This document shows positions 15,001-39,689 of a DNA stretch of 64,000 nt, piece by piece (position 1 is the first letter of the stretch; each line of letters begins with the position of its first letter). The DNA is from Auanema rhodensis (taxonomy: Eukaryota > Animalia > Nematoda). The stretch covers positions 4,712,001-4,776,000 of the forward strand of contig OZ059899.1 in assembly GCA_964057225.1 (NCBI GenBank), read 5' to 3'. Both the position numbers and the translations under genes were made by a program. The notes under the pieces are model-generated. The model saw only the letters and a program-made list of their open reading frames with translations, searched no databases and had not been told where the DNA came from.

Positions 15001-18000
15001 GAATATAAGTGTGAACTTATATCAGTTGATATCTCGGTGCATTTTTAAGCTAGCGCAAATCTGATAACACAGATCGACGCAGCTTAAAAATCCGCATCGA
15101 ATGCACTATACTACATTGAGAAACGCTTAATACAAAAATTAGTTATGATCGTTTGAAAAATGATGCATTAGTGTATGTTGAGTTTCCATGTACACTCAAC
15201 ATTGCTTCCAAAAACATTTTGACAAAATTGTTTTCGGAAAATTTCAAAATAATTTAGCAAAAAGTAGATGTTTTTAGATTCCTTTTTTCAAGGCAAAGAC
15301 GATGGACAATGTTATTCAACGAAAAAATTGATTCTTCAGGGTGAAAATCGAGAATATAAGTGTGAACTTATATCAGTTGATATCTCGGTGAATTTTTAAG
15401 CTAGCGCAAATCTGATAACACAGATCGACGCAGCTTAAAAATCCGCATCGAATGCACTATACTACATTGAGAAACGCTTAATACAAAAATTAGTTATGAT
15501 CGTTTGAAAAATGATGCATTAGTGTATGTTGAGTTTCCATGTACACTCAACATTGCTTCCAAAAACATTTTGACAAAAATTTTTTCGAAAAATTTCAAAA
15601 TAATTTAGCAAAAAGTAGATGTTTTTAGATTCCTTTTTTCAAGGCAAAGACGATGGACAATGTTATTCAACGAAAAAATTAATTCTTCAGGGTGAAAATC
15701 GAGGATATAAGTGTGAACTTATATCAGTTGATATCTCGGTGCATTTTTAAGCTAGCGCAAATCTGATAACACGGATCGACGCAGCTTAAAAATCCGCATC
15801 GAATGCACTATACTACATTGAGAAACGCTTAATACAAAAATTAGTTATGATCGTTTGAAAAATGATGCATTAGTGTATGTTGAGTTTCCATGTACACTCA
15901 ACATTGCTTCCAAAAACATTTTGACAAAATTGTTTTCGGAAAATTTCAAAATAATTTAGCAAAAAGTAGATGTTTTTAGATTCCTTTTTTCAAGGCAAAG
16001 ACGATGGACAATGTTATTCAACGAAAAAATTGATTCTTCAGGGTGAAAATCGAGAATATAAGTGTGAACTTATATCAGTTGATATCTCGGTGAATTTTTA
16101 AGCTAGCGCAAATCTGATAACACAGATCGACGCAGCTTAAAAATCCGCATCGAATGCACTATACTACATTGAGAAACGCTTAATACAAAAATTAGTTATG
16201 ATCGTTTGAAAAATGATGCATTAGTGTATGTTGAGTTTCCATGTACACTCAACATTGCTTCCAAAAACATTTTGACAAAAATTTTTTCGAAAAATTTCAA
16301 AATAATTTAGCAAAAAGTAGATGTTTTTAGATTCCTTTTTTCAAGGCAAAGACGATGGACAATGTTATTCAACGAAAAAATTAATTCTTCAGGGTGAAAA
16401 TCGAGAATATAAGTGTGAACTTATATCAGTTGATATCTCGGTGAATTTTTAAGCTAGCGCAAATCTGATAACACAGATCGACGCAGCTTAAAAATCCGCA
16501 TCGAATGCACTATACTACATTGAGAAACGCTTAATACAAAAATTAGTTATGATCGTTTGAAAAATGATGCATTAGTGTATGTTGAGTTTCCATGTACACT
16601 CAACATTGCTTCCAAAAACATTTTGACAAAAATTTTTTCGAAAAATTTCAAAATAATTTAGCAAAAAGTAGATGTTTTTAGATTCCTTTTTTCAAGGCAA
16701 AGACGATGGACAATGTTATTCAACGAAAAAATTAATTCTTCAGGGTGAAAATCGAGGATATAAGTGTGAACTTATATCAGTTGATATCTCGGTGCATTTT
16801 TAAGCTAGCGCAAATCTGATAACAGAGATCGACGCAGCTTAAAAATCCGCATCGAATGCACTATACTACATTGAGAAACGCTTAATACAAAAATCAGTTA
16901 TGATCGTTTGAAAAATGATGCATTAGTGTATGTTGAGTTTCCATGTACACTCAACATTGCTTCCAAAAACATTTTGACAAAAATTTTTTCGAAAAATTTC
17001 AAAATAATTTAGCAAAAAGTAGATGTTTTTAGATTTCTGTTTTTAAGGCAAAGACGATGGACAATGTTATTCAACGAAAAAATTAATTCTTCAGGGTGAA
17101 AATCGAGGATATAAGTGTAAACTTATATCAGTTGATATCTCGGTGCATTTTCAAGCTAGCGCAAATCTGATAACAGAGATCGACGCAGCTTAAAAATCCG
17201 CATCGAATGCACTATACTACATTGAGAAACGCTTAATACAAAAATTAGTTATGATCGTTTGAAAAATGATGCATTAGTGTATGTTGAGTTTCCATGTACA
17301 CTCAACATTGCTTCCAAAAACATTTTGACAAAATTGTTTTCGGAAAATTTCAAAATAATTTAGCAAAAAGTAGATGTTTTTAGATTCCTTTTTTCAAGGC
17401 AAAGACGATGGACAATGTTATTCAACGAAAAAATTGATTCTTCAGGGTGAAAATCGAGAATATAAGTGTGAACTTATATCAGTTGATATCTCGGTGAATT
17501 TTTAAGCTAGCGCAAATCTGATAACACAGATCGACGCAGCTTAAAAATCCGCATCGAATGCACTATACTACATTGAGAAACGCTTAATACAAAAATTAGT
17601 TATGATCGTTTGAAAAATGATGCATTAGTGTATGTTGAGTTTCCATGTACACTCAACATTGCTTCCAAAAACATTTTGACAAAAATTTTTTCGAAAAATT
17701 TCAAAATAATTTAGCAAAAAGTAGATGTTTTTAGATTCCTTTTTTCAAGGCAAAGACGATGGACAATGTTATTCAACGAAAAAATTAATTCTTCAGGGTG
17801 AAAATCGAGAATATAAGTGTGAACTTATATCAGTTGATATCTCGGTGAATTTTTAAGCTAGCGCAAATCTGATAACACAGATCGACGCAGCTTAAAAATC
17901 CGCATCGAATGCACTATACTACATTGAGAAACGCTTAATACAAAAATTAGTTATGATCGTTTGAAAAATGATGCATTAGTGTATGTTGAGTTTCCATGTA

Positions 18001-19261
18001 CACTCAACATTGCTTCCAAAAACATTTTGACAAAAATTTTTTCGAAAAATTTCAAAATAATTTAGCAAAAAGTAGATGTTTTTAGATTCCTTTTTTCAAG
18101 GCAAAGACGATGGACAATGTTATTCAACGAAAAAATTAATTCTTCAGGGTGAAAATCGAGGATATAAGTGTGAACTTATATCAGTTGATATCTCGGTGCA
18201 TTTTTAAGCTAGCGCAAATCTGATAACAGAGATCGACGCAGCTTAAAAATCCGCATCGAATGCACTATACTACATTGAGAAACGCTTAATACAAAAATCA
18301 GTTATGATCGTTTGAAAAATGATGCATTAGTGTATGTTGAGTTTCCATGTACACTCAACATTGCTTCCAAAAACATTTTGACAAAAATTTTTTCGAAAAA
18401 TTTCAAAATAATTTAGCAAAAAGTAGATGTTTTTAGATTCCTTTTTTCAAGGCAAAGACGATGGACAATGTTATTCAACGAAAAAATTAATTCTTCAGGG
18501 TGAAAATCGAGGATATAAGTGTGAACTTATATCAGTTGATATCTCGGTGCATTTTTAAGCTAGCGCAAATCTGATAACACGGATCGACGCAGCTTAAAAA
18601 TCCGCATCGAATGCACTATACTACATTGAGAAACGCTTAATACAAAAATCAGTTATGATCGTTTGAAAAATGATGCATTAGTGTATGTTGAGTTTCCATG
18701 TACACTCAACATTGCTTCCAAAAACATTTTGACAAAAATTTTTTCGAAAAATTTCAAAATAATTTAGCAAAAAGTAGATGTTTTTAGATTCCTTTTTTCA
18801 AGGCAAAGACGATGGACAATGTTATTCAACGAAAAAATTAATTCTTCAGGGTGAAAATCGAGGATATAAGTGTGAACTTATATCAGTTGATATCTCGGTG
18901 CATTTTTAAGCTAGCGCAAATCTGATAACACAGATCGACGCAGCTTAAAAATCCGCATCGAATGCACTATACTACATTGAGAAACGCTTAATACAAAAAT
19001 CAGTTATGATCGTTTGAAAAATGATGCATTAGTGTATGTTGAGTTTCCATGTACACTCAACATTGCTTCCAAAAACATTTTGACAAAAATTTTTTCGAAA
19101 AATTTCAAAATAATTTAGCAAAAAGTAGATGTTTTTAGATTCCTTTTTTCAAGGCAAAGACGATGGACAATGTTATTCAACGAAAAAATTAATTCTTCAG
19201 GGTGAAAATCGAGGATATAAGTGTGAACTTATATCAGTTGATATCTCGGTGCATTTTTAAG
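1..19261. repeat. 351-bp tandem satellite array, ~55 units, runs off the window start
   Basis: TGAGTTTCCATGTACACTC recurs at 1, 352 and onward with a 351-bp period; units differ by a few substitutions; two units carry a 42-bp insertion; the array stops at ...GCATTTTTAAG (19261). Confidence 0.99.
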
Positions 19262-19351
19262 AAATTTTTGAGAAAGAAAAATAAAAAAGAAAGAAACATT
19301 TTTAAGAACAAAAATTTTCCCGAAAAATCTCGAAATAATTTTATAATATAA
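19262..19351. other. 90-bp junction between satellite array and palindrome arm; A-rich filler plus a degenerate satellite fragment
   Basis: AAACATTTTTAAGAACAAAAATTTTCCCGAAAAATCTCGAAATAATTT resembles satellite AAAACATTTTGACAAAAATTTTTTCGAAAAATTTCAAAATAATTT; no counterpart beyond the right arm. Confidence 0.7.
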
Positions 19352-20766
19352 TCCTGTGCCTGGCGCTCCTGATGATACAGTCAACGAGAAGAAAACTGAA
19401 GAGCTTCAGTCAGTGAAAGTTGATCCAAAGGTTCAAACTTCATTGAAAATAAATGCAATAACTTATACAAATTTTTTAGGTTTTCACAGTACTTCAGCCA
19501 GTTTACCAACCCCCTACTGCTATTCCAGTAAAGCAATACAACGTATGCTAGTCTTGACGACATTTTTACACATTTTTTCTTCTTCAGCCGTTCACATCAT
19601 TTTGCCGAATTCTTCTTTATGCTTTGCTTTTTGTAACCGTGACTGGTATTACTCTATATTTGGCTCATGGAATTTACCGGCGAGAATACATTCTGGTATG
19701 TATCATTGAAAAGTTTGAAGACCCGTGTCATTATTATCGAAAGAGATAGAATTGAGAAATAAATTTAATTTTCGTATTCTTACAGAAACAGCAATCCGAT
19801 TTGGTATCTGAGCTCCAGAAGAACCAAAAGATAACGCTCCAAGCTGAAAAGCAAGTTGGCGCAAATGTAACAATTTGTTCTAAAAAAATTCCTAATTTAA
19901 GGCACATTTTCAGACAAACTTAAATATTCAACAACCCAATCAACAAGTAATTGATGGAGCAGTCAATCACAGATTTAGCTTTGACGTATGTATGTAGTGA
20001 TAAATCTATATGTAAGAATTTTCTAACAGGGCTCTGAAAGGAATAACAAAGCTCCAAATCCATGGGATCTCATTGAGGCTCGCAACATTGAATATACACA
20101 GGTTATCATTTTCATTTCTATGTAAATAACTGAATACACATAATAAAAGTATACAAATAATAATTTATGACCAAAAATTATTTTCCAATCTGGTCGAACT
20201 AGACGATTGTTTTAGTATTTATCTTTTTTTTTTATTTTACTTAACAAAAATTATTAAACGATCAATAATAAGAAAATTAATACGTTGAAAAAAAGTAAAA
20301 TTCTTTTACTCTAATTGTATTTTGATATTTGTCAGAATCAACGCATGCTTCGTTATCGCCGTATCCAACAATTAGCAATGATGGAACAACAAGAACAAAT
20401 GGCTCGTGTTGCCTGGGCTCAACAAATGGAAGCACGTGCTCAATGGGAGGCTGCTCGAATGGCCCGTGCTCAATGGGAGCAAGCACAAATGGCCCGCGCT
20501 CAGTGGGAGCAAGGTCATCAAATCAGAGCTCAATGGGCTCAATATCAGGCTGCGCAACAACCGCAAGATATGCAACCAGATTTTTCATCTTGGCATCAGG
20601 TAAAAGCCTTGTAAGATCAAAACTTAAATAATAACTCAATTTCAGCAAATACGCGCCGATAATGAAGTTCGCGCTGCTGCTTTAGCTAACGCTCAACGCG
20701 AGCAATATGCTCAATGGGTTCAACAGCAACAAATGGAGCACTACAATCGCCAACAAACTTGGATTC

Positions 20767-20816
<50 letters not shown>

Positions 20817-22978
20817 GTCCAAGAACAGCAATTCCCACAGCCTCAAATTCGTGTAAGTATTCGACAAAAATTTATCAAATTTTAGATAAGTGAATGAAAA
20901 ATGAGAAATATTCGATTTCCTTAAAAAAATTCTTTTTTTAGCCGTTCATGATTGTTCGTACCTTCTCAAGAATTGTTCCAACTCATGAAAACAATGTGAG
21001 TCTTAATTTAAAAAATTCATTTTCGTTTTACTGATACGTTTCAAGCTTAATAGGTTCGGTTTTTTTAAGATCCCTCTTAGACCCCATGATGCTTCTCCTC
21101 AAGAGATTCTTAACAATATGAATGAACTTCCTCAACCAGCTATACAAGACCGAATCTATCAGGAAATGCAGAAAAAATCTCAAAAAATGGAATTCAATGC
21201 TCCATCTAGACCGATTTGTACGTGTTTTTCTACATTTTGTGCCTAAAGTGGATTTCAATTCAGGGACTGCTATAACTCCCACTCCAGAAACTCCATCTGT
21301 GAACTCTGATGAAATTTTTCAAGCCAACTTGAAGAGTGCCATGGAAATGGAAAGCGTAAACAGACCTTTTTTTTATAAATTCTGATGATAATCAGTTCTA
21401 GACTACTACTATTTCACCACCGTCTAACGCTGATAGTTCTGAAGATAAGGTTTGTAATCAAGTTCACTACTCTTTCAATCCAATTTTGTCTCAGAATGAA
21501 GACAATATCTTCCGAGATATTTTCAATGCTATGGCTGTTGTAGTTCAACAAGAGAATCAAAAAGCTAAGCAAGAAAATATTTTCCAAGAAGTTGAACAAA
21601 TGCAGGTAAAAATTCTATCTGAATTGATTTATCATTAATGCATTTATTGATTTCACAGAAGCAGCAGGAAGTTGAAGAAGAGCAGAAGAATGGAGAAAAC
21701 ATTTTCCAGACCGTTGACAGAATCCAGGTATAGTGAATATATTAGATTTTTGCCTTTGCTTGTTTAACCAACATTCCTATTCAGAAAGAGCAAGAATCAC
21801 AACAAGAGAAAGAAAATGGAGAGAATATATTTGAAGAAGTGAATCGTATTTCAGAGAAAACAGTATTATTATGAACAAATGTTTATTGTATTAACTCTTA
21901 TTTCACAGAACGTTCGACCAGTAGTAGAAGAAACAACTACCGAAAATATTTTTCAAGAAGTATCTCGCCTTTCTGACAAAGTAGGAAGTCTTTCTTAAAA
22001 ATTAACATTAGTATTAGTTTTAGAACCAGCCAAACGTTGATAATGAATTTGAAAAAAACAACAAAGAAAGTAAAAAAACAGGATCAAACATTTTTGAACA
22101 AATCACTCAGCTTGCGGACGCTATGGTTCTTATTATATTATACGTTCCAGGTTTATATAGCTGTTTAATTTTAGATGCCAAGAGTTGAACCGGAGAAGCC
22201 AATTCCAAATGATGACGATATATTCAAAATTGTGGAAAACACTTCAAAGGATCAAGGAGATGATAACGATGATAGAAAAGAAATTGTAAGATTTATTTCA
22301 CCGATTATTAATTAGTTAAATTAAGAAAAAACTTCAATTTTTTTTACAGCTTGAAGTTACACCTGAGCCAGTAGTAGTTGAAGATTCCTTTCCAAAAATT
22401 GAAGAAAGAACAACTACATCCGAAACCCCAAACGTAAATTTATTTTATTAACATTATCATAATCAATTGAAATTATAAAAAAACTTTGAACAAGTTAAAG
22501 ATTTTTGATCTCCCACTCAAATATATTTTTTAGGATAGTACTTCAGAGGAGCACGACCCACTGGCTGCTTTTGTAAAGTAAGAGTTTATTGACTTTAATT
22601 ATTTTCCTAATATTGTCATGATTTCATGACATAATTCAAAAAAATTCCTAGAATATAGTTTTGAAGTAATCAAAGAAAAATGAAGCATTACAAAGAAATA
22701 ATTAATCTTAAACTTCATCGCATCTTGTTTTTCATCTCGCTGAGATATAAAGGCAGGAGACTAGTTAACTATGAAATGAAAAGATTTTTTTTTATTTTAA
22801 AGTAAGACTAAAAAATTAAAACTGAAAAAAGATAAAACATGAAACATAAAACGGCTCATAAAAATATTTTTGTAGCATCGAAGATTTCGAGAGAAAGGCA
22901 CTAGAAGTTGTTAATGCCATGAAGTCTAATATGGAAAAAGAACAACCATCTCCAGTGGCTCAAATAAAAACGGCATAA
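19352..22978 (+). pseudogene. 5'-truncated duplicate of the secreted Gln-rich protein gene (no ATG or signal peptide)
   Basis: Mirror of 34333-37971; the arm begins at codons VPGAPDD and the upstream MKILIIFYLILCF... coding sequence is replaced by junction/satellite DNA. Confidence 0.75.
20766..20816 (+). repeat. (CAA)17 coding microsatellite (polyQ); mirror copy 36495-36557 has 21 units
   Basis: Direct count. Confidence 0.9.
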
Positions 22979-23018
22979 GTTTTCACTGTCTATCCTTTCT
23001 TCACAAATTAATTACTAT

Positions 23019-23024
23019 TCTCTC

Positions 23025-23093
<69 letters not shown>
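23019..23093. repeat. Compound (CT)n(TA)n microsatellite between convergent 3' ends; mirror at ~34206-34292 is 12 bp longer
   Basis: Direct reading. Confidence 0.9.
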
Positions 23094-23097
<4 letters not shown>

Positions 23098-23329
23098 GCT
23101 TTTTTATTGTACCTTCTTCCTTTCCCTCTAACTCTAGTGTTATATATATATATATATTATATCATCTGCTTTTTGAATCTTTAGTTGTATTCTACTGCTT
23201 TGCTAGCAGTCTTGTAAATAAAAATTTATACTACAACAAAATGTTTTACAAAGTTGGAGAAGTAGATATAAAACACGATTGGTTTCGTATTTTTAAATTT
23301 CGATTCACGGTAAAGTCAATCGTCCATTT

Positions 23330-25142
23330 TTATTTGTTTACAGTAAAAACAATTCGTCCATTTTTAACAACTTGTTTAATAATACTGTTCTGTCCAGCCA
23401 TTCTGAATGATTTAAAATTTTTCATACAAACCATTCTTTTCGTTATATAATCGAACCTGTAAATTATATGTTCCCATGACGGAGCATTCAAAACAACGAA
23501 ATCGGCATTTCGTCCAACACTAATAGCTCCTAAAATGAATGGGGGAGGCGGTACGACAATAGTAAAAGAAAACAATTACCATGTGTTTTTCCTCTACCAA
23601 TAGAATGAGCTGAATTCAAGGTTGCGGCAACTAATGCTTCATTCATAGATAAATGCATAGTGATACAAGCTAAAACAAGTACTATGAACTTTATGCAAAT
23701 ATGGTCTCTAACCCAAATGCATAATCATTGGCATGGAATAGCAGAATGCGTTTGGATTGAAGTCGGAACCAAGAGCTATAATCACATCTGTAAATAATTT
23801 GTTTTCAGTGGAGTATGTTTTCAAAAATTAAACTGTTTTCAATCATTTTACGCGCAGGAGGGGGGTTTAGACGTAGTATAAAGGCAGTGGACGGCAATAA
23901 AATAGCCACTGTTCCTGATGATGCCATAAGTGATATTCCAGTTTCCGATATCTCCTCCAGATGAGACATTGCACGAGCCTTCATGGAAAAATTCTTCGAA
24001 ATGAAAACCTCAGCTTACCCCAATACTTGAGCCCATTTCGACACCTCCTATATAAGTAAGCTCTTCAGCGTGAAAATTTGCTGCCAGTCCTATTTTTTTG
24101 CCAGCTTTCAGAATTCGTCGACTAAATATATAGTTTAACTAAAGTTAATCAACCAATTCCAAATACGCTGTCTCCACTTCAAAAACTCCCTTTTCACAAA
24201 AGACATCAATGTTTTCTAAGTTTTTGAATCCTCCTATTTTTTTCTCTCGTTCTATTTCAGGAATTATTTCGGTACAAATCATCTCAGTTTGAGTCAATTC
24301 GTCAGTATCCTAAAAGATCAAATTAGCTATGCATGCAGAGTTTACAACCTTCGGAACAGCATGCGCACCACAAAATGTTGCTGAAACTTCTAATGGGACA
24401 GTATTACACGCTCGACTTAAAACTCGCAACATCTCAAATTTTATAATAAAGTTTTTTATTATCAATCAGCTCATTCACTTTCAACTCTGATTCTTTATCC
24501 AAACCGTAACCGCTTTTAGCTTCGAGTGTTGTTGTGCCATCTTTGACCATCATTCCCGCGACCTGCTCCATAAAAATAATGTGGATTGAGGTGTTTTTAT
24601 ACCTCAACAAAAGATAGTAGTAGCTCTTCTTCGCTTGCAGCCCTAGTTCTTGATGTTGTGAAATGAATTCCACCGCCTGCTGCTTGAACCTTTGCCGACA
24701 ATATTAAAAGATTTCTAAATTATTTCAATTTTCTTACTTCCATGTAAGTGGCGCCAGCTAATTTCATCGCAAATTCGTGAACACGATCTCCAGCAAAGAC
24801 GGGATGTGAGTGAGCATCCACAAAGCCGGGAATTAAAATTCCTCCATGTGATTCTACAATATTCTCTACTTGTTTCTCATCAATGGAATTCACTATGCTA
24901 GAGAGATCCCCGACAGCAGATATTTTGCCATTTGCATCAACTAAGACTGCTAAGTTGCACGATGCGTCTTCCAATATCTTTAAAATTCATCTATTCTTAT
25001 CTTTATAAAAGTAGAAGCACATGGTGGTAGTACCAACCTTTATGTTGTTCATATTTTCTTTTCCATGAAGAAACTCAACATTATGATCGTCTGTAATCTG
25101 GATGATTTGCTTCAATCCTTTGATAAGAAGTAGTGAAGACAT
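23330..25142 (-). CDS. amdh-1: Imidazolonepropionase (AMDHD1/HutI amidohydrolase), left-arm copy
   Basis: IPGFVDAHSHPVFAGDRVHEFAMKLAGATYMEV, GTTTLEAKSGYGL, DVFCEKGVF, ALGSDFNPNA motifs; mirror of 32157-33969. Confidence 0.92.
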
Positions 25143-25560
25143 GTAACCTGAAAATAATTTTCAAATATTATTGAAAATAAGAGAAAAATCATGTGATAGA
25201 TTGCATAGTAGACAAATGGTGTCAATCAACCAAATGGAAGACCGGCAAACTGTATGCTATTCTTTTATAGGATCGACAACCTGTTTCAACTCATAAAAAC
25301 AGAAAAATTGCTTTCATCATTCTTCACATTAAGGGAGAAAAGGATTCTGATCCTCTTAAACCAGGATGGTTTTTTGTAATTTCCATCTACAGAATTAAAC
25401 AATCACATATCCGATGAAAAGCAAAATTTCCTAATAAAAATCCATGTGTTTGCTATTATACATAAAACAAAATATTTTATTTTCATTAAAAACTAGCGTG
25501 ATACAATATTATCACTTAAAATGATCGAATCAGATTTAAAACTTTTTTTTATTCATTATT

Positions 25561-28119
25561 TTATGCATTTTTTTCGTTCAAAACTTGAGAAAAATTAGAT
25601 GAATCATAGTCGTCACCCATTTGGGTGTCATCATTGAAAACACCATAAATTAATTTTTTTAATTCAAGTAGATCGTTTGAAACAATTTCCTCAAACCGTT
25701 CGAGATGAACTTTTCCCAGAGACTGAAAATAAATATTTCAAAATTTTTAAAAAATGTTTTAAAAAATACGTCTGTAATTTCCGGAACCGGCATTTGCTTC
25801 AGTTTTGAACGGACCTCACTTACTCGCGCCTTAATGCATAGTTCATGTAAATAAAAGTAAGACTTACACACCGAAATACATGCTTCGAATTCTTTATTGG
25901 TCTTTGCAGCTGTTGAATCTTCTTCTGCATATGCTTCTAGTGCAGAGCCAATAGCACCATGAGTGAGCACTGTCAAACGATCATCCCAGGCCATATCTTC
26001 AAAGTATGATGATATCTATAACAAAAACAATACAGATAGCGATAGAAATTAGCATGATTTCATGCTTGAATCTCACAACTTGTTCCACATTAGCAGCACT
26101 TACGGCCGCTGTTGGTTGATTAGCTTGATGTTGCTTCCCATTCCGACAATCTTTTTTCTTTTTATCTCCTATCTAACAAACAAATTGATGAAAACAAAAA
26201 ACTACTCGCTTACTCGCTTAGTAACAATCATATCAAGTGCATTTGCAACCTGATCATCGAATTTCGCTCCTACACGACGCACATTTATAGGCTGAAATAA
26301 ATATATAACATTTTAAAAATATATAATATTTACTTGCATATCAGCCCATGCTCCAGCATAAATAACTTTCAGCCGAATCAAAGGTAGTTTCGGCTGTCTT
26401 GGACCTCGAGCTAGATTGGCTCGTTTTATCATTTCTTCAACTTTTTGCTTTATGACAACTTCATCCTTTAACAGTTTTCATAAAAACTAAAACTGAAAAC
26501 ATCGATTACCAAAAAAGGAGGCCCATTTGGCCTAACACCCCCTGAAGGAATTCGCACATTTTTTGGTAGGTCATCCAAAATAATTTCATCGCATATAATC
26601 TTAATCAAATTGCCATAATGAGAATATGAGAAATACCTGACGAGTAGTTTGTAAAGGAATCGGCTTGCACTGGAATTTCCTTCCCCGAATTTTGATCAAA
26701 AAAACATTTTTTTCAAGGGCCTCCTCTTTCGTAAGAGACGTAGCAATGGTGGAGCCAGGTTGAAGAACGAAAAAGCCATCACCCATAGCATCAGAAGAAG
26801 AAATATATTGACACTCTAAATATGATAATATGCAGACAAATAAATAAAACTTCTGAGAACTACCCTTCTTACACTCATGTTCATGACCCCAAATTACTAA
26901 ATCGAAAAACGATGGAATGTATTGTTCAGGTAAATAAGCTCCTGTTGACCTGGTAGTGGATCTTAATAAATCACATATAGATAAAAGTGGAGTATCAAAG
27001 TAACAAAAAACCGTTTAGGTCGATTTTGGTGCAAAACAAAAAGGTTAAACCAATCTTCGGCTCCTGCTTGCGGTCTCAGGAATTTAATAGATTCATCTAA
27101 GTTCAAGTTATATGCTTCGAAAAAAAAAAATTTACTTTGAAATGCTCTACATAAGCGATCATCACGCTGGCTTCCCAATCCAAATAGAGCCAATCTCGTT
27201 TCACCTTTACGTAAGAGAATAGGAGAAATCTAGTACTCAGAAAAATTTAAATACATATACATTGCATTGGTTACCTCGAAAGTATCGATATCTTCATGTT
27301 TTCCAAACAAGTTCACTAAACCAGCTTCGTGAAGGAGATCAAGAGCAGTTAAACCCTTGAAGACTACATTAGAGCAGAAAACCACAAGTAATACCTTGCC
27401 TGCCATGTCATCATGGTTACCATGTATAGTAAATATAGGTAAGCCAACATTTATATTACAGTCCTAAATAAGATCATTACAATATAAGTGTTATTATTAA
27501 ATGGATACTTCATAATTTACTCGATCAAACCGACTTTGATTGAAATTCACAGAAGCATCGGACAAAAACTCAAGAGCAACCTGTTAGATTAGAAATGCTG
27601 AAACAATATAATATTCCAATGAGACATACTTCTCGATCATTAAGACAATATTGGCGTAAAAGTTGAACGACCCTATGCTGCATGTCTCTTGTTGGTTGGT
27701 TTTCATGAAATAAATCTCCACCTATAATTAGTCTGAGCAAAAAAAACTGCAAACATAATTACCTAGTAATACCATGTCAACATTTTTATCAACAGCAATT
27801 TGCAGAACTTCTTCGAGCGAATTGATAGAATCCAAATATCTAAACTCAACAATGAAATATATCCAACCTATATGATCACCTATTCGGTTTATTTTCTGCA
27901 TAGCCGACATGAATATCTGTGGCAACCAATATTTTTATATCATCCGTATCACCCTTGCCCGTAAGTGCTAACTCATTTACCTAAAATAATTAACTAAATT
28001 AACCGTCCGTATTCACTCACAAGTGATTCATTCAATGGAATATTATGTAGAATAGAACTGTCCACGTTGTCAATAACTGATTTGTCCAATTCTATATCGG
28101 ATTCATCTTCCCCACACAT
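25561..28119 (-). CDS. mre-11: MRE11 double-strand-break repair nuclease, left-arm copy
   Basis: Mirror of 29180-31738; no difference seen between the mirror ORF translations. Confidence 0.92.
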
Positions 28120-28331
28120 TATTTCCACTTAAATATTAAAATTAAACAAATGCATGTCTAACAGTGACACACACAATCTGACAAAACTAAGAAAAAATAC
28201 GTAATATATATCGTAAATAGTTACTATCACGTCTAATCATAAAATTTTTTTTTAAATTGAATAAAAATATGAACGGATTTTATGTTCATTTTTAGGCTTT
28301 TAGTGTTTAGTCAGTTCTATTCTAGAATTTG

Positions 28332-28367
28332 TTTTTATATCTGTTTAGGCTCAGCCGATAATAAAAA
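28332..28367 (+). other. Candidate chromosome-break/telomere-addition motif TTTAGGC-TCA-GCC in AT-rich dyad flanks (left copy)
   Basis: TTTTTATATCTGTTTAGGCTCAGCCGATAATAAAAA; nematode telomere hexamer TTAGGC at 28345-28350; function inferred, not shown. Confidence 0.45.
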
Positions 28368-28593
28368 TGTTGTTCATCCAATAAAAAAACTACAAAGATA
28401 AAATTAACACTAAAATCCTTGCCAAACATACCTTTCAAAATCATCAAAACCTGCATTATAACGTTGAACAAACCACTCTCTTATAATATAAAAGGTTTTT
28501 TTTTCACTTTTTTCCAATATGATTATGCTAAAAAGCAATTTCACCCTAAAGAATGTATTTTTTCGTCTAATAACATTGTCCATCGTTTTTGTC

Positions 28594-28762
28594 TTGAAGA
28601 CAGATCGACGCAGCTTGAAAAAACGCATCAGATGCACTTAACGACATCAAGAAAAAGATAAGTTATAATCGTTTGAAAAATGATGTATTAGTGTATGTTG
28701 AGTTTGACAAAAACGATGAACAATGTTATTAGACGAAAAAATACATTCTTTAGGGTGAAATT
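28594..28762 (+). repeat. Degenerate, internally deleted copy of the 351-bp satellite forming the palindrome spacer (28594-28705) and the innermost part of the arms
   Basis: ACAGATCGACGCAGCTTGAAAAAACGCATC...GTTTGAAAAATGATGTATTAGTGTATGTTGAGTTT, then GACAAAAACGATGAACAATGTTATTAGACGAAAAAATACATTCTTTAGGGTGAAA, align to two segments of the satellite unit. Confidence 0.9.
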
Positions 28763-28931
28763 GCTTTTTAGCATAATCATATTGGAAAAAAGTGAAAAAA
28801 AAACCTTTTATATTATAAGAGAGTGGTTTGTTCAACGTTATAATGCAGGTTTTGATGATTTTGAAAGGTATGTTTGGCAAGGATTTTAGTGTTAATTTTA
28901 TCTTTGTAGTTTTTTTATTGGATGAACAACA

Positions 28932-28967
28932 TTTTTATTATCGGCTGAGCCTAAACAGATATAAAAA
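28932..28967 (-). other. Candidate chromosome-break/telomere-addition motif (right, mirror copy; GGC-TGA-GCCTAAA on +)
   Basis: GCCTAA at 28949-28954, oriented as a left-end telomere seed for the gene-rich right side; function inferred. Confidence 0.45.
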
Positions 28968-29179
28968 CAAATTCTAGAATAGAACTGACTAAACACTAAA
29001 AGCCTAAAAATGAACATAAAATCCGTTCATATTTTTATTCAATTTAAAAAAAAATTTTATGATTAGACGTGATAGTAACTATTTACGATATATATTACGT
29101 ATTTTTTCTTAGTTTTGTCAGATTGTGTGTGTCACTGTTAGACATGCATTTGTTTAATTTTAATATTTAAGTGGAAATA

Positions 29180-31738
29180 ATGTGTGGGGAAGATGAATCC
29201 GATATAGAATTGGACAAATCAGTTATTGACAACGTGGACAGTTCTATTCTACATAATATTCCATTGAATGAATCACTTGTGAGTGAATACGGACGGTTAA
29301 TTTAGTTAATTATTTTAGGTAAATGAGTTAGCACTTACGGGCAAGGGTGATACGGATGATATAAAAATATTGGTTGCCACAGATATTCATGTCGGCTATG
29401 CAGAAAATAAACCGAATAGGTGATCATATAGGTTGGATATATTTCATTGTTGAGTTTAGATATTTGGATTCTATCAATTCGCTCGAAGAAGTTCTGCAAA
29501 TTGCTGTTGATAAAAATGTTGACATGGTATTACTAGGTAATTATGTTTGCAGTTTTTTTTGCTCAGACTAATTATAGGTGGAGATTTATTTCATGAAAAC
29601 CAACCAACAAGAGACATGCAGCATAGGGTCGTTCAACTTTTACGCCAATATTGTCTTAATGATCGAGAAGTATGTCTCATTGGAATATTATATTGTTTCA
29701 GCATTTCTAATCTAACAGGTTGCTCTTGAGTTTTTGTCCGATGCTTCTGTGAATTTCAATCAAAGTCGGTTTGATCGAGTAAATTATGAAGTATCCATTT
29801 AATAATAACACTTATATTGTAATGATCTTATTTAGGACTGTAATATAAATGTTGGCTTACCTATATTTACTATACATGGTAACCATGATGACATGGCAGG
29901 CAAGGTATTACTTGTGGTTTTCTGCTCTAATGTAGTCTTCAAGGGTTTAACTGCTCTTGATCTCCTTCACGAAGCTGGTTTAGTGAACTTGTTTGGAAAA
30001 CATGAAGATATCGATACTTTCGAGGTAACCAATGCAATGTATATGTATTTAAATTTTTCTGAGTACTAGATTTCTCCTATTCTCTTACGTAAAGGTGAAA
30101 CGAGATTGGCTCTATTTGGATTGGGAAGCCAGCGTGATGATCGCTTATGTAGAGCATTTCAAAGTAAATTTTTTTTTTTCGAAGCATATAACTTGAACTT
30201 AGATGAATCTATTAAATTCCTGAGACCGCAAGCAGGAGCCGAAGATTGGTTTAACCTTTTTGTTTTGCACCAAAATCGACCTAAACGGTTTTTTGTTACT
30301 TTGATACTCCACTTTTATCTATATGTGATTTATTAAGATCCACTACCAGGTCAACAGGAGCTTATTTACCTGAACAATACATTCCATCGTTTTTCGATTT
30401 AGTAATTTGGGGTCATGAACATGAGTGTAAGAAGGGTAGTTCTCAGAAGTTTTATTTATTTGTCTGCATATTATCATATTTAGAGTGTCAATATATTTCT
30501 TCTTCTGATGCTATGGGTGATGGCTTTTTCGTTCTTCAACCTGGCTCCACCATTGCTACGTCTCTTACGAAAGAGGAGGCCCTTGAAAAAAATGTTTTTT
30601 TGATCAAAATTCGGGGAAGGAAATTCCAGTGCAAGCCGATTCCTTTACAAACTACTCGTCAGGTATTTCTCATATTCTCATTATGGCAATTTGATTAAGA
30701 TTATATGCGATGAAATTATTTTGGATGACCTACCAAAAAATGTGCGAATTCCTTCAGGGGGTGTTAGGCCAAATGGGCCTCCTTTTTTGGTAATCGATGT
30801 TTTCAGTTTTAGTTTTTATGAAAACTGTTAAAGGATGAAGTTGTCATAAAGCAAAAAGTTGAAGAAATGATAAAACGAGCCAATCTAGCTCGAGGTCCAA
30901 GACAGCCGAAACTACCTTTGATTCGGCTGAAAGTTATTTATGCTGGAGCATGGGCTGATATGCAAGTAAATATTATATATTTTTAAAATGTTATATATTT
31001 ATTTCAGCCTATAAATGTGCGTCGTGTAGGAGCGAAATTCGATGATCAGGTTGCAAATGCACTTGATATGATTGTTACTAAGCGAGTAAGCGAGTAGTTT
31101 TTTGTTTTCATCAATTTGTTTGTTAGATAGGAGATAAAAAGAAAAAAGATTGTCGGAATGGGAAGCAACATCAAGCTAATCAACCAACAGCGGCCGTAAG
31201 TGCTGCTAATGTGGAACAAGTTGTGAGATTCAAGCATGAAATCATGCTAATTTCTATCGCTATCTGTATTGTTTTTGTTATAGATATCATCATACTTTGA
31301 AGATATGGCCTGGGATGATCGTTTGACAGTGCTCACTCATGGTGCTATTGGCTCTGCACTAGAAGCATATGCAGAAGAAGATTCAACAGCTGCAAAGACC
31401 AATAAAGAATTCGAAGCATGTATTTCGGTGTGTAAGTCTTACTTTTATTTACATGAACTATGCATTAAGGCGCGAGTAAGTGAGGTCCGTTCAAAACTGA
31501 AGCAAATGCCGGTTCCGGAAATTACAGACGTATTTTTTAAAACATTTTTTAAAAATTTTGAAATATTTATTTTCAGTCTCTGGGAAAAGTTCATCTCGAA
31601 CGGTTTGAGGAAATTGTTTCAAACGATCTACTTGAATTAAAAAAATTAATTTATGGTGTTTTCAATGATGACACCCAAATGGGTGACGACTATGATTCAT
31701 CTAATTTTTCTCAAGTTTTGAACGAAAAAAATGCATAA
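29180..31738 (+). CDS. mre-11: MRE11 double-strand-break repair nuclease, right-arm copy (3' end approximate)
   Basis: Starts MCGEDES; phosphoesterase motifs ILVATDIHVGY, LLGGDLFHEN, IHGNHDD, LFVLHQNR, IWGHEHEC, QPGSTIATSL, LPLIRLKV across more than 12 short introns. Confidence 0.93.
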
Positions 31739-32156
31739 AATAATGAATAAAAAAAAGTTTTAAATCTGATTCGATCATTTTAAGTGATAATATTGTATCA
31801 CGCTAGTTTTTAATGAAAATAAAATATTTTGTTTTATGTATAATAGCAAACACATGGATTTTTATTAGGAAATTTTGCTTTTCATCGGATATGTGATTGT
31901 TTAATTCTGTAGATGGAAATTACAAAAAACCATCCTGGTTTAAGAGGATCAGAATCCTTTTCTCCCTTAATGTGAAGAATGATGAAAGCAATTTTTCTGT
32001 TTTTATGAGTTGAAACAGGTTGTCGATCCTATAAAAGAATAGCATACAGTTTGCCGGTCTTCCATTTGGTTGATTGACACCATTTGTCTACTATGCAATC
32101 TATCACATGATTTTTCTCTTATTTTCAATAATATTTGAAAATTATTTTCAGGTTAC

Positions 32157-33969
32157 ATGTCTTCACTACTTCTTATCAAAGGATTGAAGCAAATCATCCA
32201 GATTACAGACGATCATAATGTTGAGTTTCTTCATGGAAAAGAAAATATGAACAACATAAAGGTTGGTACTACCACCATGTGCTTCTACTTTTATAAAGAT
32301 AAGAATAGATGAATTTTAAAGATATTGGAAGACGCATCGTGCAACTTAGCAGTCTTAGTTGATGCAAATGGCAAAATATCTGCTGTCGGGGATCTCTCTA
32401 GCATAGTGAATTCCATTGATGAGAAACAAGTAGAGAATATTGTAGAATCACATGGAGGAATTTTAATTCCCGGCTTTGTGGATGCTCACTCACATCCCGT
32501 CTTTGCTGGAGATCGTGTTCACGAATTTGCGATGAAATTAGCTGGCGCCACTTACATGGAAGTAAGAAAATTGAAATAATTTAGAAATCTTTTAATATTG
32601 TCGGCAAAGGTTCAAGCAGCAGGCGGTGGAATTCATTTCACAACATCAAGAACTAGGGCTGCAAGCGAAGAAGAGCTACTACTATCTTTTGTTGAGGTAT
32701 AAAAACACCTCAATCCACATTATTTTTATGGAGCAGGTCGCGGGAATGATGGTCAAAGATGGCACAACAACACTCGAAGCTAAAAGCGGTTACGGTTTGG
32801 ATAAAGAATCAGAGTTGAAAGTGAATGAGCTGATTGATAATAAAAAACTTTATTATAAAATTTGAGATGTTGCGAGTTTTAAGTCGAGCGTGTAATACTG
32901 TCCCATTAGAAGTTTCAGCAACATTTTGTGGTGCGCATGCTGTTCCGAAGGTTGTAAACTCTGCATGCATAGCTAATTTGATCTTTTAGGATACTGACGA
33001 ATTGACTCAAACTGAGATGATTTGTACCGAAATAATTCCTGAAATAGAACGAGAGAAAAAAATAGGAGGATTCAAAAACTTAGAAAACATTGATGTCTTT
33101 TGTGAAAAGGGAGTTTTTGAAGTGGAGACAGCGTATTTGGAATTGGTTGATTAACTTTAGTTAAACTATATATTTAGTCGACGAATTCTGAAAGCTGGCA
33201 AAAAAATAGGACTGGCAGCAAATTTTCACGCTGAAGAGCTTACTTATATAGGAGGTGTCGAAATGGGCTCAAGTATTGGGGTAAGCTGAGGTTTTCATTT
33301 CGAAGAATTTTTCCATGAAGGCTCGTGCAATGTCTCATCTGGAGGAGATATCGGAAACTGGAATATCACTTATGGCATCATCAGGAACAGTGGCTATTTT
33401 ATTGCCGTCCACTGCCTTTATACTACGTCTAAACCCCCCTCCTGCGCGTAAAATGATTGAAAACAGTTTAATTTTTGAAAACATACTCCACTGAAAACAA
33501 ATTATTTACAGATGTGATTATAGCTCTTGGTTCCGACTTCAATCCAAACGCATTCTGCTATTCCATGCCAATGATTATGCATTTGGGTTAGAGACCATAT
33601 TTGCATAAAGTTCATAGTACTTGTTTTAGCTTGTATCACTATGCATTTATCTATGAATGAAGCATTAGTTGCCGCAACCTTGAATTCAGCTCATTCTATT
33701 GGTAGAGGAAAAACACATGGTAATTGTTTTCTTTTACTATTGTCGTACCGCCTCCCCCATTCATTTTAGGAGCTATTAGTGTTGGACGAAATGCCGATTT
33801 CGTTGTTTTGAATGCTCCGTCATGGGAACATATAATTTACAGGTTCGATTATATAACGAAAAGAATGGTTTGTATGAAAAATTTTAAATCATTCAGAATG
33901 GCTGGACAGAACAGTATTATTAAACAAGTTGTTAAAAATGGACGAATTGTTTTTACTGTAAACAAATAA
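32157..33969 (+). CDS. amdh-1: Imidazolonepropionase (AMDHD1/HutI amidohydrolase), right-arm copy
   Basis: ATG at 32157 just after a TTTTCAG acceptor (likely trans-splice site); HxH metal motif, EAKSGYGL, FHAEEL, SHLE, GSDFNP; stop at 33969. Confidence 0.92.
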
Positions 33970-34201
33970 AAATGGACGATTGACTTTACCGTGAATCGAA
34001 ATTTAAAAATACGAAACCAATCGTGTTTTATATCTACTTCTCCAACTTTGTAAAACATTTTGTTGTAGTATAAATTTTTATTTACAAGACTGCTAGCAAA
34101 GCAGTAGAATACAACTAAAGATTCAAAAAGCAGATGATATAATATATATATATATATAACACTAGAGTTAGAGGGAAAGGAAGAAGGTACAATAAAAAAG
34201 C

Positions 34202-34286
<85 letters not shown>

Positions 34287-34332
34287 GAGAGAATAGTAAT
34301 TAATTTGTGAAGAAAGGATAGACAGTGAAAAC

Positions 34333-36494
34333 TTATGCCGTTTTTATTTGAGCCACTGGAGATGGTTGTTCTTTTTCCATATTAGACTTCATGGCATTAA
34401 CAACTTCTAGTGCCTTTCTCTCGAAATCTTCGATGCTACAAAAATATTTTTATGAGCCGTTTTATGTTTCATGTTTTATCTTTTTTCAGTTTTAATTTTT
34501 TAGTCTTACTTTAAAATAAAAAAAAATCTTTTCATTTCATAGTTAACTAGTCTCCTGCCTTTATATCTCAGCGAGATGAAAAACAAGATGCGATGAAGTT
34601 TAAGATTAATTATTTCTTTGTAATGCTTCATTTTTCTTTGATTACTTCAAAACTATATTCTAGGAATTTTTTTGAATTATGTCATGAAATCATGACAATA
34701 TTAGGAAAATAATTAAAGTCAATAAACTCTTACTTTACAAAAGCAGCCAGTGGGTCGTGCTCCTCTGAAGTACTATCCTAAAAAATATATTTGAGTGGGA
34801 GATCAAAAATCTTTAACTTGTTCAAAGATTTTTTATAATTTCAATTGATTATGATAATGTTAATAAAATAAATTTACGTTTGGGGTTTCGGATGTAGTTG
34901 TTCTTTCTTCAATTTTTGGAAAGGAATCTTCAACTACTACTGGCTCAGGTGTAACTTCAAGCTGTAAAAAAAAATGAAGTTTTTTCTTAATTTAACTAAT
35001 TAATAATCGGTGAAATAAATCTTACAATTTCTTTTCTATCATCGTTATCATCTCCTTGATCCTTTGAAGTGTTTTCCACAATTTTGAATATATCGTCATC
35101 ATTTGGAATTGGCTTCTCCGGTTCAACTCTTGGCATCTAAAATTAAACAGCTATATAAACCTGGAACGTATAATATAATAAGAACCATAGCGTCCGCAAG
35201 CTGAGTGATTTGTTCAAAAATGTTTGATCCTGTTTTTTTACTTTCTTTGTTGTTTTTTTCAAATTCATTATCAACGTTTGGCTGGTTCTAAAACTAATAC
35301 TAATGTTAATTTTTAAGAAAGACTTCCTACTTTGTCAGAAAGGCGAGATACTTCTTGAAAAATATTTTCGGTAGTTGTTTCTTCTACTACTGGTCGAACG
35401 TTCTGTGAAATAAGAGTTAATACAATAAACATTTGTTCATAATAATACTGTTTTCTCTGAAATACGATTCACTTCTTCAAATATATTCTCTCCATTTTCT
35501 TTCTCTTGTTGTGATTCTTGCTCTTTCTGAATAGGAATGTTGGTTAAACAAGCAAAGGCAAAAATCTAATATATTCACTATACCTGGATTCTGTCAACGG
35601 TCTGGAAAATGTTTTCTCCATTCTTCTGCTCTTCTTCAACTTCCTGCTGCTTCTGTGAAATCAATAAATGCATTAATGATAAATCAATTCAGATAGAATT
35701 TTTACCTGCATTTGTTCAACTTCTTGGAAAATATTTTCTTGCTTAGCTTTTTGATTCTCTTGTTGAACTACAACAGCCATAGCATTGAAAATATCTCGGA
35801 AGATATTGTCTTCATTCTGAGACAAAATTGGATTGAAAGAGTAGTGAACTTGATTACAAACCTTATCTTCAGAACTATCAGCGTTAGACGGTGGTGAAAT
35901 AGTAGTAGTCTAGAACTGATTATCATCAGAATTTATAAAAAAAAGGTCTGTTTACGCTTTCCATTTCCATGGCACTCTTCAAGTTGGCTTGAAAAATTTC
36001 ATCAGAGTTCACAGATGGAGTTTCTGGAGTGGGAGTTATAGCAGTCCCTGAATTGAAATCCACTTTAGGCACAAAATGTAGAAAAACACGTACAAATCGG
36101 TCTAGATGGAGCATTGAATTCCATTTTTTGAGATTTTTTCTGCATTTCCTGATAGATTCGGTCTTGTATAGCTGGTTGAGGAAGTTCATTCATATTGTTA
36201 AGAATCTCTTGAGGAGAAGCATCATGGGGTCTAAGAGGGATCTTAAAAAAACCGAACCTATTAAGCTTGAAACGTATCAGTAAAACGAAAATGAATTTTT
36301 TAAATTAAGACTCACATTGTTTTCATGAGTTGGAACAATTCTTGAGAAGGTACGAACAATCATGAACGGCTAAAAAAAGAATTTTTTTAAGGAAATCGAA
36401 TATTTCTCATTTTTCATTCACTTATCTAAAATTTGATAAATTTTTGTCGAATACTTACACGAATTTGAGGCTGTGGGAATTGCTGTTCTTGGAC

Positions 36495-36556
<62 letters not shown>

Positions 36557-38075
36557 GAATCCAAGTTTGTTGGCGATTGTAGTGCTCCATTTGTTGCTGT
36601 TGAACCCATTGAGCATATTGCTCGCGTTGAGCGTTAGCTAAAGCAGCAGCGCGAACTTCATTATCGGCGCGTATTTGCTGAAATTGAGTTATTATTTAAG
36701 TTTTGATCTTACAAGGCTTTTACCTGATGCCAAGATGAAAAATCTGGTTGCATATCTTGCGGTTGTTGCGCAGCCTGATATTGAGCCCATTGAGCTCTGA
36801 TTTGATGACCTTGCTCCCACTGAGCGCGGGCCATTTGTGCTTGCTCCCATTGAGCACGGGCCATTCGAGCAGCCTCCCATTGAGCACGTGCTTCCATTTG
36901 TTGAGCCCAGGCAACACGAGCCATTTGTTCTTGTTGTTCCATCATTGCTAATTGTTGGATACGGCGATAACGAAGCATGCGTTGATTCTGACAAATATCA
37001 AAATACAATTAGAGTAAAAGAATTTTACTTTTTTTCAACGTATTAATTTTCTTATTATTGATCGTTTAATAATTTTTGTTAAGTAAAATAAAAAAAAAAG
37101 ATAAATACTAAAACAATCGTCTAGTTCGACCAGATTGGAAAATAATTTTTGGTCATAAATTATTATTTGTATACTTTTATTATGTGTATTCAGTTATTTA
37201 CATAGAAATGAAAATGATAACCTGTGTATATTCAATGTTGCGAGCCTCAATGAGATCCCATGGATTTGGAGCTTTGTTATTCCTTTCAGAGCCCTGTTAG
37301 AAAATTCTTACATATAGATTTATCACTACATACATACGTCAAAGCTAAATCTGTGATTGACTGCTCCATCAATTACTTGTTGATTGGGTTGTTGAATATT
37401 TAAGTTTGTCTGAAAATGTGCCTTAAATTAGGAATTTTTTTAGAACAAATTGTTACATTTGCGCCAACTTGCTTTTCAGCTTGGAGCGTTATCTTTTGGT
37501 TCTTCTGGAGCTCAGATACCAAATCGGATTGCTGTTTCTGTAAGAATACGAAAATTAAATTTATTTCTCAATTCTATCTCTTTCGATAATAATGACACGG
37601 GTCTTCAAACTTTTCAATGATACATACCAGAATGTATTCTCGCCGGTAAATTCCATGAGCCAAATATAGAGTAATACCAGTCACGGTTACAAAAAGCAAA
37701 GCATAAAGAAGAATTCGGCAAAATGATGTGAACGGCTGAAGAAGAAAAAATGTGTAAAAATGTCGTCAAGACTAGCATACGTTGTATTGCTTTACTGGAA
37801 TAGCAGTAGGGGGTTGGTAAACTGGCTGAAGTACTGTGAAAACCTAAAAAATTTGTATAAGTTATTGCATTTATTTTCAATGAAGTTTGAACCTTTGGAT
37901 CAACTTTCACTGACTGAAGCTCTTCAGTTTTCTTCTCGTTGACTGTATCATCAGGAGCGCCAGGCACAGGAACTATGCCTAGTTTTGTCATTTTTGCTGA
38001 AAAGTACACTATTTTCATAAACATAATACATATTGTAAAACAAAGAATCAGATAGAAAATGATGAGAATCTTCAT
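34333..38075 (-). CDS. Multi-exon, predicted secreted protein of unknown function: signal peptide, Cys-containing segment, ARAQWEQ repeats, polyQ, repeated (E/D)NIF(Q/E)xV acidic motifs
   Basis: Hydrophobic N-terminus MKILIIFYLILCFTICI; exons bounded by GT..AG short introns; last exon ...EQPSPVAQIKTA* with stop at 34333-34335; full splicing not resolved. Confidence 0.7.
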
Positions 38076-39689
38076 GAATTCAACAAAATAATAATTGATG
38101 TAAGTAATACCGAAAACTCAAGCGGCGACCATGACTAAGAAGAAGGAACAAGCGGAAAATTAGAATAATCCAGTATTAATGAAACGATTAAAACATTCTG
38201 AGATGAAAATAGAAAATTAGAAAAGTAGGAGAATGAACAGGTCACAAGAGGTCACTTGATTGTTAGGATCATGGAGAAAAAGTTGTTGCTGATATATTCT
38301 TTTTTATGGTATTTTTCCTATGATGAGCAGGATTTAAAAAGAAAAAGGTATAAACGAGACAATTACTTTTTGGAAAGGTAAGAAACAGTTTTTCTTTTTT
38401 CTGCTGGTATTATACCTTTCTGGATTGATATAAATGGAATAGCTTCACAGTATGATATTAAAGATATAGATGACTATTTTCTTTGATATAAATGAGGTCA
38501 AACCTTTCGTTTTACGAATGATGTCGTCTTTAGAGAGAAAACTGTAGATTTTAATTATTAATCTATAGACTATCACACTGAAGTAATTAGAAAAAAAGAA
38601 ATTAAATGTTTGAACCAACAAAAAGCACGTTCGTTGTTCCCGAACATTAGCGAAATACATGAATATATTATATGGATCTGGAAACTTCTGATCCAAGATA
38701 GATGAGATAGATAGATTAGCAAATTCAATAAGAAAATTAGGTAGAACATAAAGAAAGTCCTCTCGGTGAATGATAGATAATGTTCTATCATCAAGTGTAC
38801 AGGTGATGAGAATTGTTCAAACCCCAATCACAAGATCTTAAAATGTGCGATGGAGGTCATCATAGGCTCTCGAATGGCCGTTGAACCTAATACATTCGAT
38901 TTCGGGGTTGACCGTGCTCAACCATGGACAACCGGAATAAATGAATTTGAAACGAAGATATTAATGTGAGTTAAGGTGATACTATGCAGACTACAGTTTA
39001 TTGGAGAAAGTATTTTTAGCCAACGATCAGAATGACAACACGCCTGATGATGAAGACGACAGTATGGAAAATTCTCGTTACGTTGATCATATGACAATTG
39101 ATAGATAAGGAAAATAAAATAGAATAAGAAATCATCAAGTGAATTAAGACAGTGATGACTGAACACACATGATGATGTCGTCAACTATTTCGTTCAATTT
39201 ATATTTAGGTTTTGACAGTATCATTACATGAAAAACCGTTATGCCTTCGAACTGATTCATCATAGAATTCTAGATCACCATTGTCATTTACGACGGGACT
39301 GCGAACAATGCCAACTAAGTCAAAGTTTAAGCTTTGAATTATATAACGTTTTCAATGAAACATTTTTTGACAGTCTGACTGATTCTTCATCAGTATTGTC
39401 TGAGCTTTATGGCTCGTGTTCAGCTAAAAAGTCTTTGTTTCGTTCTAATTGCTGGTTGTACGAAAAATCATCACCATTATCTGAATCCAAGGTCGATAAT
39501 TGTAAATAGTCAAAAAGGCAAGGTGATTATAAGGAAGTAATAAGTTATATTGGAATATTTAAGATTCAAAAAATCAGAATATGAAGATTTTTACAAGAGG
39601 AGTTCAAAGGTACAAGTAAAAAAATGGGGATTGAAACAGAAATGTTGTAACCATATCGCGAATATATTCTAAACACTAACTTACTTTTT

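Follow-up and report, generated by a model that had tools for sequence, protein, structure and literature searches.

We detected at positions 28933-28961 of the analysed window, a stretch of 64,000 nucleotides of Auanema rhodense contig OZ059899.1, a site that is very probably a working programmed DNA elimination break site, an SFE (Sequence For Elimination) of the Auanema/Oscheius type at the chromosome 6 boundary. The first-pass annotation had read the site from the letters alone as a break site and a germline-soma boundary, and a check for telomere junctions near 28950 had been set beforehand. In contigs of two public runs (X2 and X3), (GCCTAA)n takes the place of the germline sequence immediately to the left of 28948, and the stretch inward of the motif is much shallower, bearing out that reading; a reading of raw sequence can thus correctly call a break site, and public short-read contigs suffice to confirm it.

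The SFE system of A. rhodense has been described by Gonzalez de la Rosa et al. (bioRxiv 10.64898/2026.08.27.747507, August 2026; hereafter the preprint). According to the preprint, 61% of the germline genome is eliminated, mostly as 167-504-bp tandem repeats, 28/28 internal break sites overlap a 29-base palindromic motif, and telomere addition takes place between motif positions 14 and 15. The elimination boundary of chromosome 6 has copies of MRE-11, imidazolonepropionase and a Gln-rich gene on either side, and nearby second motifs are reported on chromosomes 1-3. The gene content and the described features make the window almost certainly this chromosome 6 boundary. The site is a member of the already published system, and little is added here beyond the preprint except the palindrome in which the site lies.

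Eleven public DNA runs contain the stretch, and the contigs of four of them (X1, X2, X3 and X9) were compared with positions 28250-31249. The evidence consists of short-read contigs built on 31-letter words, not of reads; each depth is the mean over a contig, and such contigs leave out rare forms. The features of the window are as follows.

1-19261, forward strand: 351-bp satellite array (TRF; 54.6 copies), extending past the left end of the window
19262-19351, no strand assigned: junction of satellite and left arm, with a degenerate satellite piece at 19294-19341 (81% to consensus 34-77), then about 10 AT-rich filler bases
19352-28593, reverse strand: left palindrome arm, inverted copy of 28706-37971
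19356-19709, forward strand: 5'-truncated gene fragment at the outer end of the left arm (counterpart at 37617-38117, reverse strand)
about 20315-20882, on the left (reverse) arm: second copy of the Gln-rich gene, inverted copy of the right arm
about 23333-24986, on the left (reverse) arm: second copy of imidazolonepropionase, inverted copy of the right arm
about 25659-28119, on the left (reverse) arm: second copy of mre-11, inverted copy of the right arm
28338-28366, no strand assigned: left 29-nt break motif, TATCTGTTTAGGCT-C-AGCCGATAATAAAA; the right copy lies 595 bp away
28594-28705, forward strand: palindrome-axis spacer, 112 nt, non-palindromic, a diverged satellite piece
28706-37971, forward strand: right palindrome arm, running on into gene-bearing DNA at the right
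28933-28961, no strand assigned: right 29-nt break motif, TTTTATTATCGGCT-G-AGCCTAAACAGATA
about 29180-31640, forward strand: mre-11 on the presumably retained side (ATG at 29180; one exon matches MRE11/Rad32 structures, E = 3e-7, PDB sequence search)
32313-33966, forward strand: imidazolonepropionase, exon fragments (PDB imidazolonepropionases, E = 1e-8)
36429-37008, reverse strand: Gln-rich protein gene, containing the (CAA)n run that differs between the arms

Palindrome between the satellite and the gene-bearing DNA

The palindrome is 18.6 kb long (arms 19352-28593 and 28706-37971, with the 112-nt spacer between them) and adjoins the 351-bp satellite, the units of which show about 99% identity to their consensus. 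The satellite at 1-19261 is presumed to be germline-restricted, eliminated DNA. In the run contigs, the word depth of satellite-like 31-mers reaches 25000, as compared with 65-400 for the arms. At 28661-28705 and in the satellite, a 31-mer depth of 25000 where the arms are at 65-106 means that the satellite is present in thousands of copies even when whole animals are sequenced. None of the four FISH probes of the preprint matched the window, even with 5 mismatches, which is compatible with a satellite from a repeat family that was left unprobed.

Satellite similarity continues into the axis of the palindrome. The spacer at 28597-28705 matches satellite consensus 239-351 plus 1-7 (78%), and the innermost 55-60 nt of either arm match consensus 109-168 (87-88%), while in the remaining ~180 nt per side, out to the motifs, no satellite similarity was detectable. 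The core of about 595 bp between the motifs, which the first-pass annotation took to be satellite-derived, is thus of this origin in its middle third (28539-28760, 222 bp), with no detectable similarity elsewhere. At the outer junction (19262-19351), microhomology to the sequence that follows the right arm amounts to at most 1 nt.

The arms are 99.97% identical. They differ by three substitutions (28580/28719, 22337/34974 and 22483/34828) and by two microsatellite length changes of 12 bp each, in (CT)n near 23030 versus 34270 and in (CAA)n near 20766 versus 36550; both repeats are longer than the 31-letter words on which the contigs are built. Owing to the (CAA)n difference, the presumably retained and the presumably eliminated copy of the Gln-rich gene encode polyQ tracts of unequal length. 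This gene fits the "glutamine-rich protein orthologous to brp-1" of the preprint. For imidazolonepropionase, a Pfam comparison of single exon fragments returned a weak Amidohydro_3 match only. The ATG of mre-11 lies 233 bp from the break-motif centre, so the somatic gene would be located about 230 bp from the new telomere. Rfam and tRNA scans of 19-64 kb gave no matches, and no RNA gene accounts for the region.

The outer end of the palindrome cuts an exon (PVPGAPDDTVNEKK...), leaving the left-arm fragment fused to degenerate satellite; this truncated fragment might be related to the strongly expressed orphan gene reported in the preprint from a boundary of chromosome 6. Farther to the right, judging the translations by eye, we noted a Gly-Pro-rich collagen-like gene at 46215-47187 (reverse strand) in the retained right-hand DNA and an ORF at 58724-59440 (reverse strand) that looks like the DNA-binding N-terminus of a mariner-type transposase.

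An assembly artefact, for example a fold-back chimeric long read, could imitate such a structure, in which case there would be one arm and a single break motif between the satellite and mre-11. The identity of 99.97% between the arms speaks for such an error, as does the fact that the arm-to-"ttgaag..." junction is the sole type among the contigs listed for X1 and X9. In X1, one 5.6-kb contig passes from the arm through the motif into the spacer as far as 28665 with zero mismatches. The junction of spacer and right arm, 28705/28706, was not seen among the contigs listed for the four runs, and exact-ORF look-ups across both spacer junctions and the outer arm boundary found nothing on record. 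However, the fold-back of one molecule would not give the three base differences and two microsatellite differences between the arms. The other end of the left arm joins the satellite at 19352, and this second junction would require a second chimeric event. The X2 contig that runs inward from the motif stops at 28579, exactly one base short of the arm-specific base 28580. The arm contig of X9, with a single mismatch and a link to the "ttgaag..." junction, is consistent with the left-arm allele. The eliminated paralogs are also present in the curated annotation of the preprint, although this probably derives from the same assembly. We consider an artefact quite improbable; the existence of two physical arms is supported by the three substitutions, the two 12-bp microsatellite differences and the X2 contig end at 28579.

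In X9, the motif-crossing contig near 28706 shows a 13-nt match to the left-arm/spacer junction (ttgaagacagatc) and then departs from the spacer. The X9 sample may have a different axis sequence, or the palindrome may be absent from it.

In the literature, our search gave no relevant account of inverted duplications at the elimination sites of nematodes. The boundary palindrome is a new detail, absent from the text of the preprint, in which "palindrom" refers to the motif only and "inverted" to figure markers only.

Telomere junction at the motif centre in public DNA runs

Two contigs begin at 28948 immediately after telomere repeat, one of 1,664 nt in X2 (depth 400.7) and one of 5,303 nt in X3 (depth 106.3). 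Both carry 20 extra letters to the left of 28948, TAAGCCTAAGCCTAAGCCTA, that is, (GCCTAA)n. The native AGCCTAA at 28948-28954 is in phase with TAAGCCTAAGCCTAAGCCTA, resulting in 27 nt of perfect (GCCTAA)n followed by unique DNA. The neo-telomere junction lies between 28947 and 28948, but since AGCCTAA continues the phase of the repeat, it could equally be placed anywhere up to 28954; the germline G at 28947 is the first base that misfits the telomere repeat. Written with the retained half first (TATCTGTTTAGGCT, C, AGCCGATAATAAAA), the motif has its junction after position 14. A graph of 31-letter words cannot make this join from a 7-nt overlap, and therefore reads with the junction exist. Most DNA of these two public samples thus has (GCCTAA)n attached directly to the sequence that follows 28947.

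The unbroken form was detected as well. X2 has a separate 247-nt contig (28333-28579, depth 72) that spans the motif unbroken, so that intact and telomere-healed forms occur side by side in this run, the intact one at lower depth. The stretch between the motifs has a depth of 72 versus 400.7 in X2 and of about 2-3 versus 106.3 in X3, that is, 5- to 40-fold shallower relative to the arm contigs within 28250-31249. The contigs of X1 and X9 span the motif intact. Unbroken and healed forms coexist, and their proportions differ greatly between samples. The missing telomere tip in X1 and X9 is not counter-evidence, since the contigs drop short tips and rare branches and show presence only. Assuming two copies of the inner stretch in each germline genome, the germline share in X2 is about 10%; the preprint gives coverage of 29x for repeat-rich and 236x for gene-rich DNA, about 12%.

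The arms share all 31-mers near the site and, because they are near-identical mirror images, the contigs cannot assign the telomere to one arm. Genomic context and the preprint point to the right, gene-side arm as the somatically retained copy and to the left arm as the germline-only copy, lost with the satellite.

Two further observations concern individual samples. In X2, two small bubbles at A7 and T7 runs are present in mre-11 (30562-30643), with a major form at a depth of 361-375 and a minor form, a 1-nt deletion, at a depth of 15-23; they could reflect homopolymer error or an arm-copy difference in the sample, and the arms of the window are identical at this place. In X3, contigs of about 2x match partly at 28494 and 29056 and then continue into 255 unrelated letters, which suggests a rare rearranged or paralogous boundary copy in the sample.

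Could the telomere junction be an ordinary germline end, or a terminal deletion that arose spontaneously and was capped by telomerase in part of the animals, a polymorphism which the assembly joined to the satellite? Contigs alone do not separate cell types, and X1 and X9 show the unbroken form only. Against this explanation, the junction coincides precisely with the midpoint of a GGC-N3-GCC palindrome like those already published, and it is identical in two samples with very different unbroken shares. X2 carries the unbroken and healed forms together, the absence of tips from X1 and X9 is expected from contig simplification, and the preprint describes exactly this boundary. We regard a polymorphism of this kind as highly improbable and retain the reading as a programmed break site.

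The motif itself was located as the first-pass annotation had given it. TTTAGGCTCAGCC at 28344-28356 and GGCTGAGCCTAAA at 28943-28955 are exact reverse complements, and the centres of the two motif copies lie 595 bp apart, each about 300 bp from the palindrome axis. The flanks, which it had described as T-rich and A-rich, have an AT content of 72-80% over 50-100 nt per side versus 68% in the non-satellite part of the window. The right motif has the core GGCT-N-AGCC and palindromic pairing at 8/14 pairs (4 in the core and 4/10 outside it), the outer pairing being at chance, as 30% of background 29-mers reach 4. GGC-TGA-GCC at 28943-28951 is the sole such site in the window besides its mirror.

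By shuffling, 0.14 occurrences of GGCTNAGCC are expected per window, and its two copies count as one event because the palindrome duplicates them, as the first-pass annotation had itself cautioned. Outside the satellite, the hexamer TTAGGC occurs 7 times versus 7.5 expected and GCCTAA 6 times versus 7.3 expected. In terms of sequence statistics alone, the motif is weak evidence and not significant; neither the TTAGGC hexamers nor GGCTNAGCC are significantly enriched, and therefore the case rests on the reads. Towards the arm, 55 bp beyond each copy of the motif, there is a second single TTAGGC/GCCTAA unit (28292-28297 and 29002-29007); no telomere addition was found at this unit in the samples examined, where the contigs pass straight through it. 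That the motif is a chance match at a satellite/gene boundary without special function agrees with the 0.14 expected copies of GGCTNAGCC per window, the chance frequency of TTAGGC and a background-level score against the O. tipulae skeleton, but it is already refuted by the telomere repeats that join the motif centre in two runs, and its probability is practically nil.

Proposed break mechanism and origin of the palindrome

Following the work on O. tipulae and A. rhodense, a factor would recognise the degenerate 29-nt palindrome in pre-somatic blastomeres at about the 12-cell stage. A double-strand break would then be made at the motif centre, the ends would be resected, and telomerase would prime on the GGC/GCC of the 3' overhang. 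On the retained half, the overhang terminates in ...TTTAGGC(T), which contains one entire telomere unit, and should be an unusually good primer. The satellite side would be lost in micronucleus-like bodies. The telomere-like half of each motif copy faces its own arm, and both copies are presumably cut, which would release a 595-bp piece. The left copy, located inside the eliminated DNA, is possibly a back-up or fail-safe break site of the kind demonstrated in O. tipulae.

Taken together, spacer and right arm form a single colinear satellite relic that continues into the motif and mre-11, and therefore a break followed by fold-back is the simplest history of the palindrome. A germline break within the satellite relic would have been followed by fold-back priming over the 112-nt loop; 9.2 kb would then have been copied, and the end would have been rejoined to the satellite through no more than 1 nt of microhomology plus about 10 filler bases. 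The duplication most likely arose recently by such fold-back repair of a germline break. The three differences in 9.2 kb imply either a recent event or ongoing gene conversion from arm to arm. Nematode chromosomes are holocentric, and the palindrome structure would therefore not be dicentric.

The position of the axis, about 300 bp inside the eliminated DNA, places the motif twice in mirror orientation, and the germline would carry a second, eliminated copy of mre-11, imidazolonepropionase and the Gln-rich gene. A young palindrome would account together for the germline-only twins of MRE-11 and its neighbours, the doubled motif and the closeness of mre-11 (~230 bp) to the new telomere.

We tentatively suggest, while considering it unlikely, that the palindrome is a germline scar left either by the elimination machinery or by the repair of breaks at the boundary, and that this is a recurrent route to motif doublets and to germline-only gene copies, here of the break-processing mre-11. 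In this view, a break located just within the eliminated side would have been mended by fold-back copying of 9 kb of retained DNA. If so, the second motifs on chromosomes 1-3 would be products of the same process at different ages. If such palindromes are found at boundaries repeatedly, they would have implications for the way in which genes enter eliminated DNA and break sites multiply or move.

Comparison with known break systems

The site shares with the A. rhodense SFEs the 29-nt degenerate palindrome with a central base between four conserved residues, the AT-rich flanks and the precise central telomere addition after position 14. The switch from a low-coverage tandem-repeat block to high-coverage genes is shared too (depth being taken here from the inter-motif stretch), as are the duplicated MRE-11, imidazolonepropionase and Gln-rich genes at the chromosome 6 boundary, and nothing contradicts membership. 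The arrangement of the paralogs as one 18.6-kb palindrome and of the motif as a mirrored pair 595 bp apart is unmentioned in the preprint text.

With the O. tipulae SFE (Dockendorff et al. 2022; PMC13060919), the site shares the GGC-N3-GCC core, telomerase priming on GGC/GCC, the palindromic character, and break and telomere addition at the motif centre. In O. tipulae, additional copies of the motif within the eliminated DNA provide a fail-safe. Its sites are subtelomeric and 0.6% of the genome is removed, whereas here the eliminated side is a large satellite block. The first-pass annotation had suggested scoring the site with the Oscheius/Auanema break motif. From the text of PMC13060919, we rebuilt an O. 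tipulae skeleton with TTTA at 1-4, AGGT at 4-7, GGC at 11-13 and GCC at 17-19, plus the palindromic partner. The site scored 14/20, six of these from the core, and unrelated 29-mers of the window scored 13-15. The GGC-N3-GCC core matched and the outer half-sites stayed at background level. The O. tipulae outer consensus, TTTAGGT (1-7) and ACCTAAA (23-29), was matched at 8/14 positions, which is background, and it does not describe this site.

Programmed breaks, healing by TTAGGC and satellite-rich eliminated DNA are shared with C. auriculariae, C. monodelphis, C. parvicauda, Mesorhabditis belari and Ascaris. The Caenorhabditis SFEs are non-palindromic, consist of one or two parts and are located in retained DNA upstream of the addition site, whereas here a palindromic motif spans the junction. 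The motif of Mesorhabditis belari is bipartite, and the break regions of Ascaris extend over 3-6 kb without a motif.

In Tetrahymena rDNA, a palindrome is formed beside chromosome breakage sequences. The likeness to the present boundary includes programmed breakage, telomere addition and a large palindrome with a short non-palindromic spacer, and the origin of both structures is put down to a break close by, followed by fold-back priming at short inverted repeats. The difference is that in Tetrahymena the break makes the palindrome in the somatic nucleus, whereas here the germline palindrome pre-exists and the breaks cut it near its axis.
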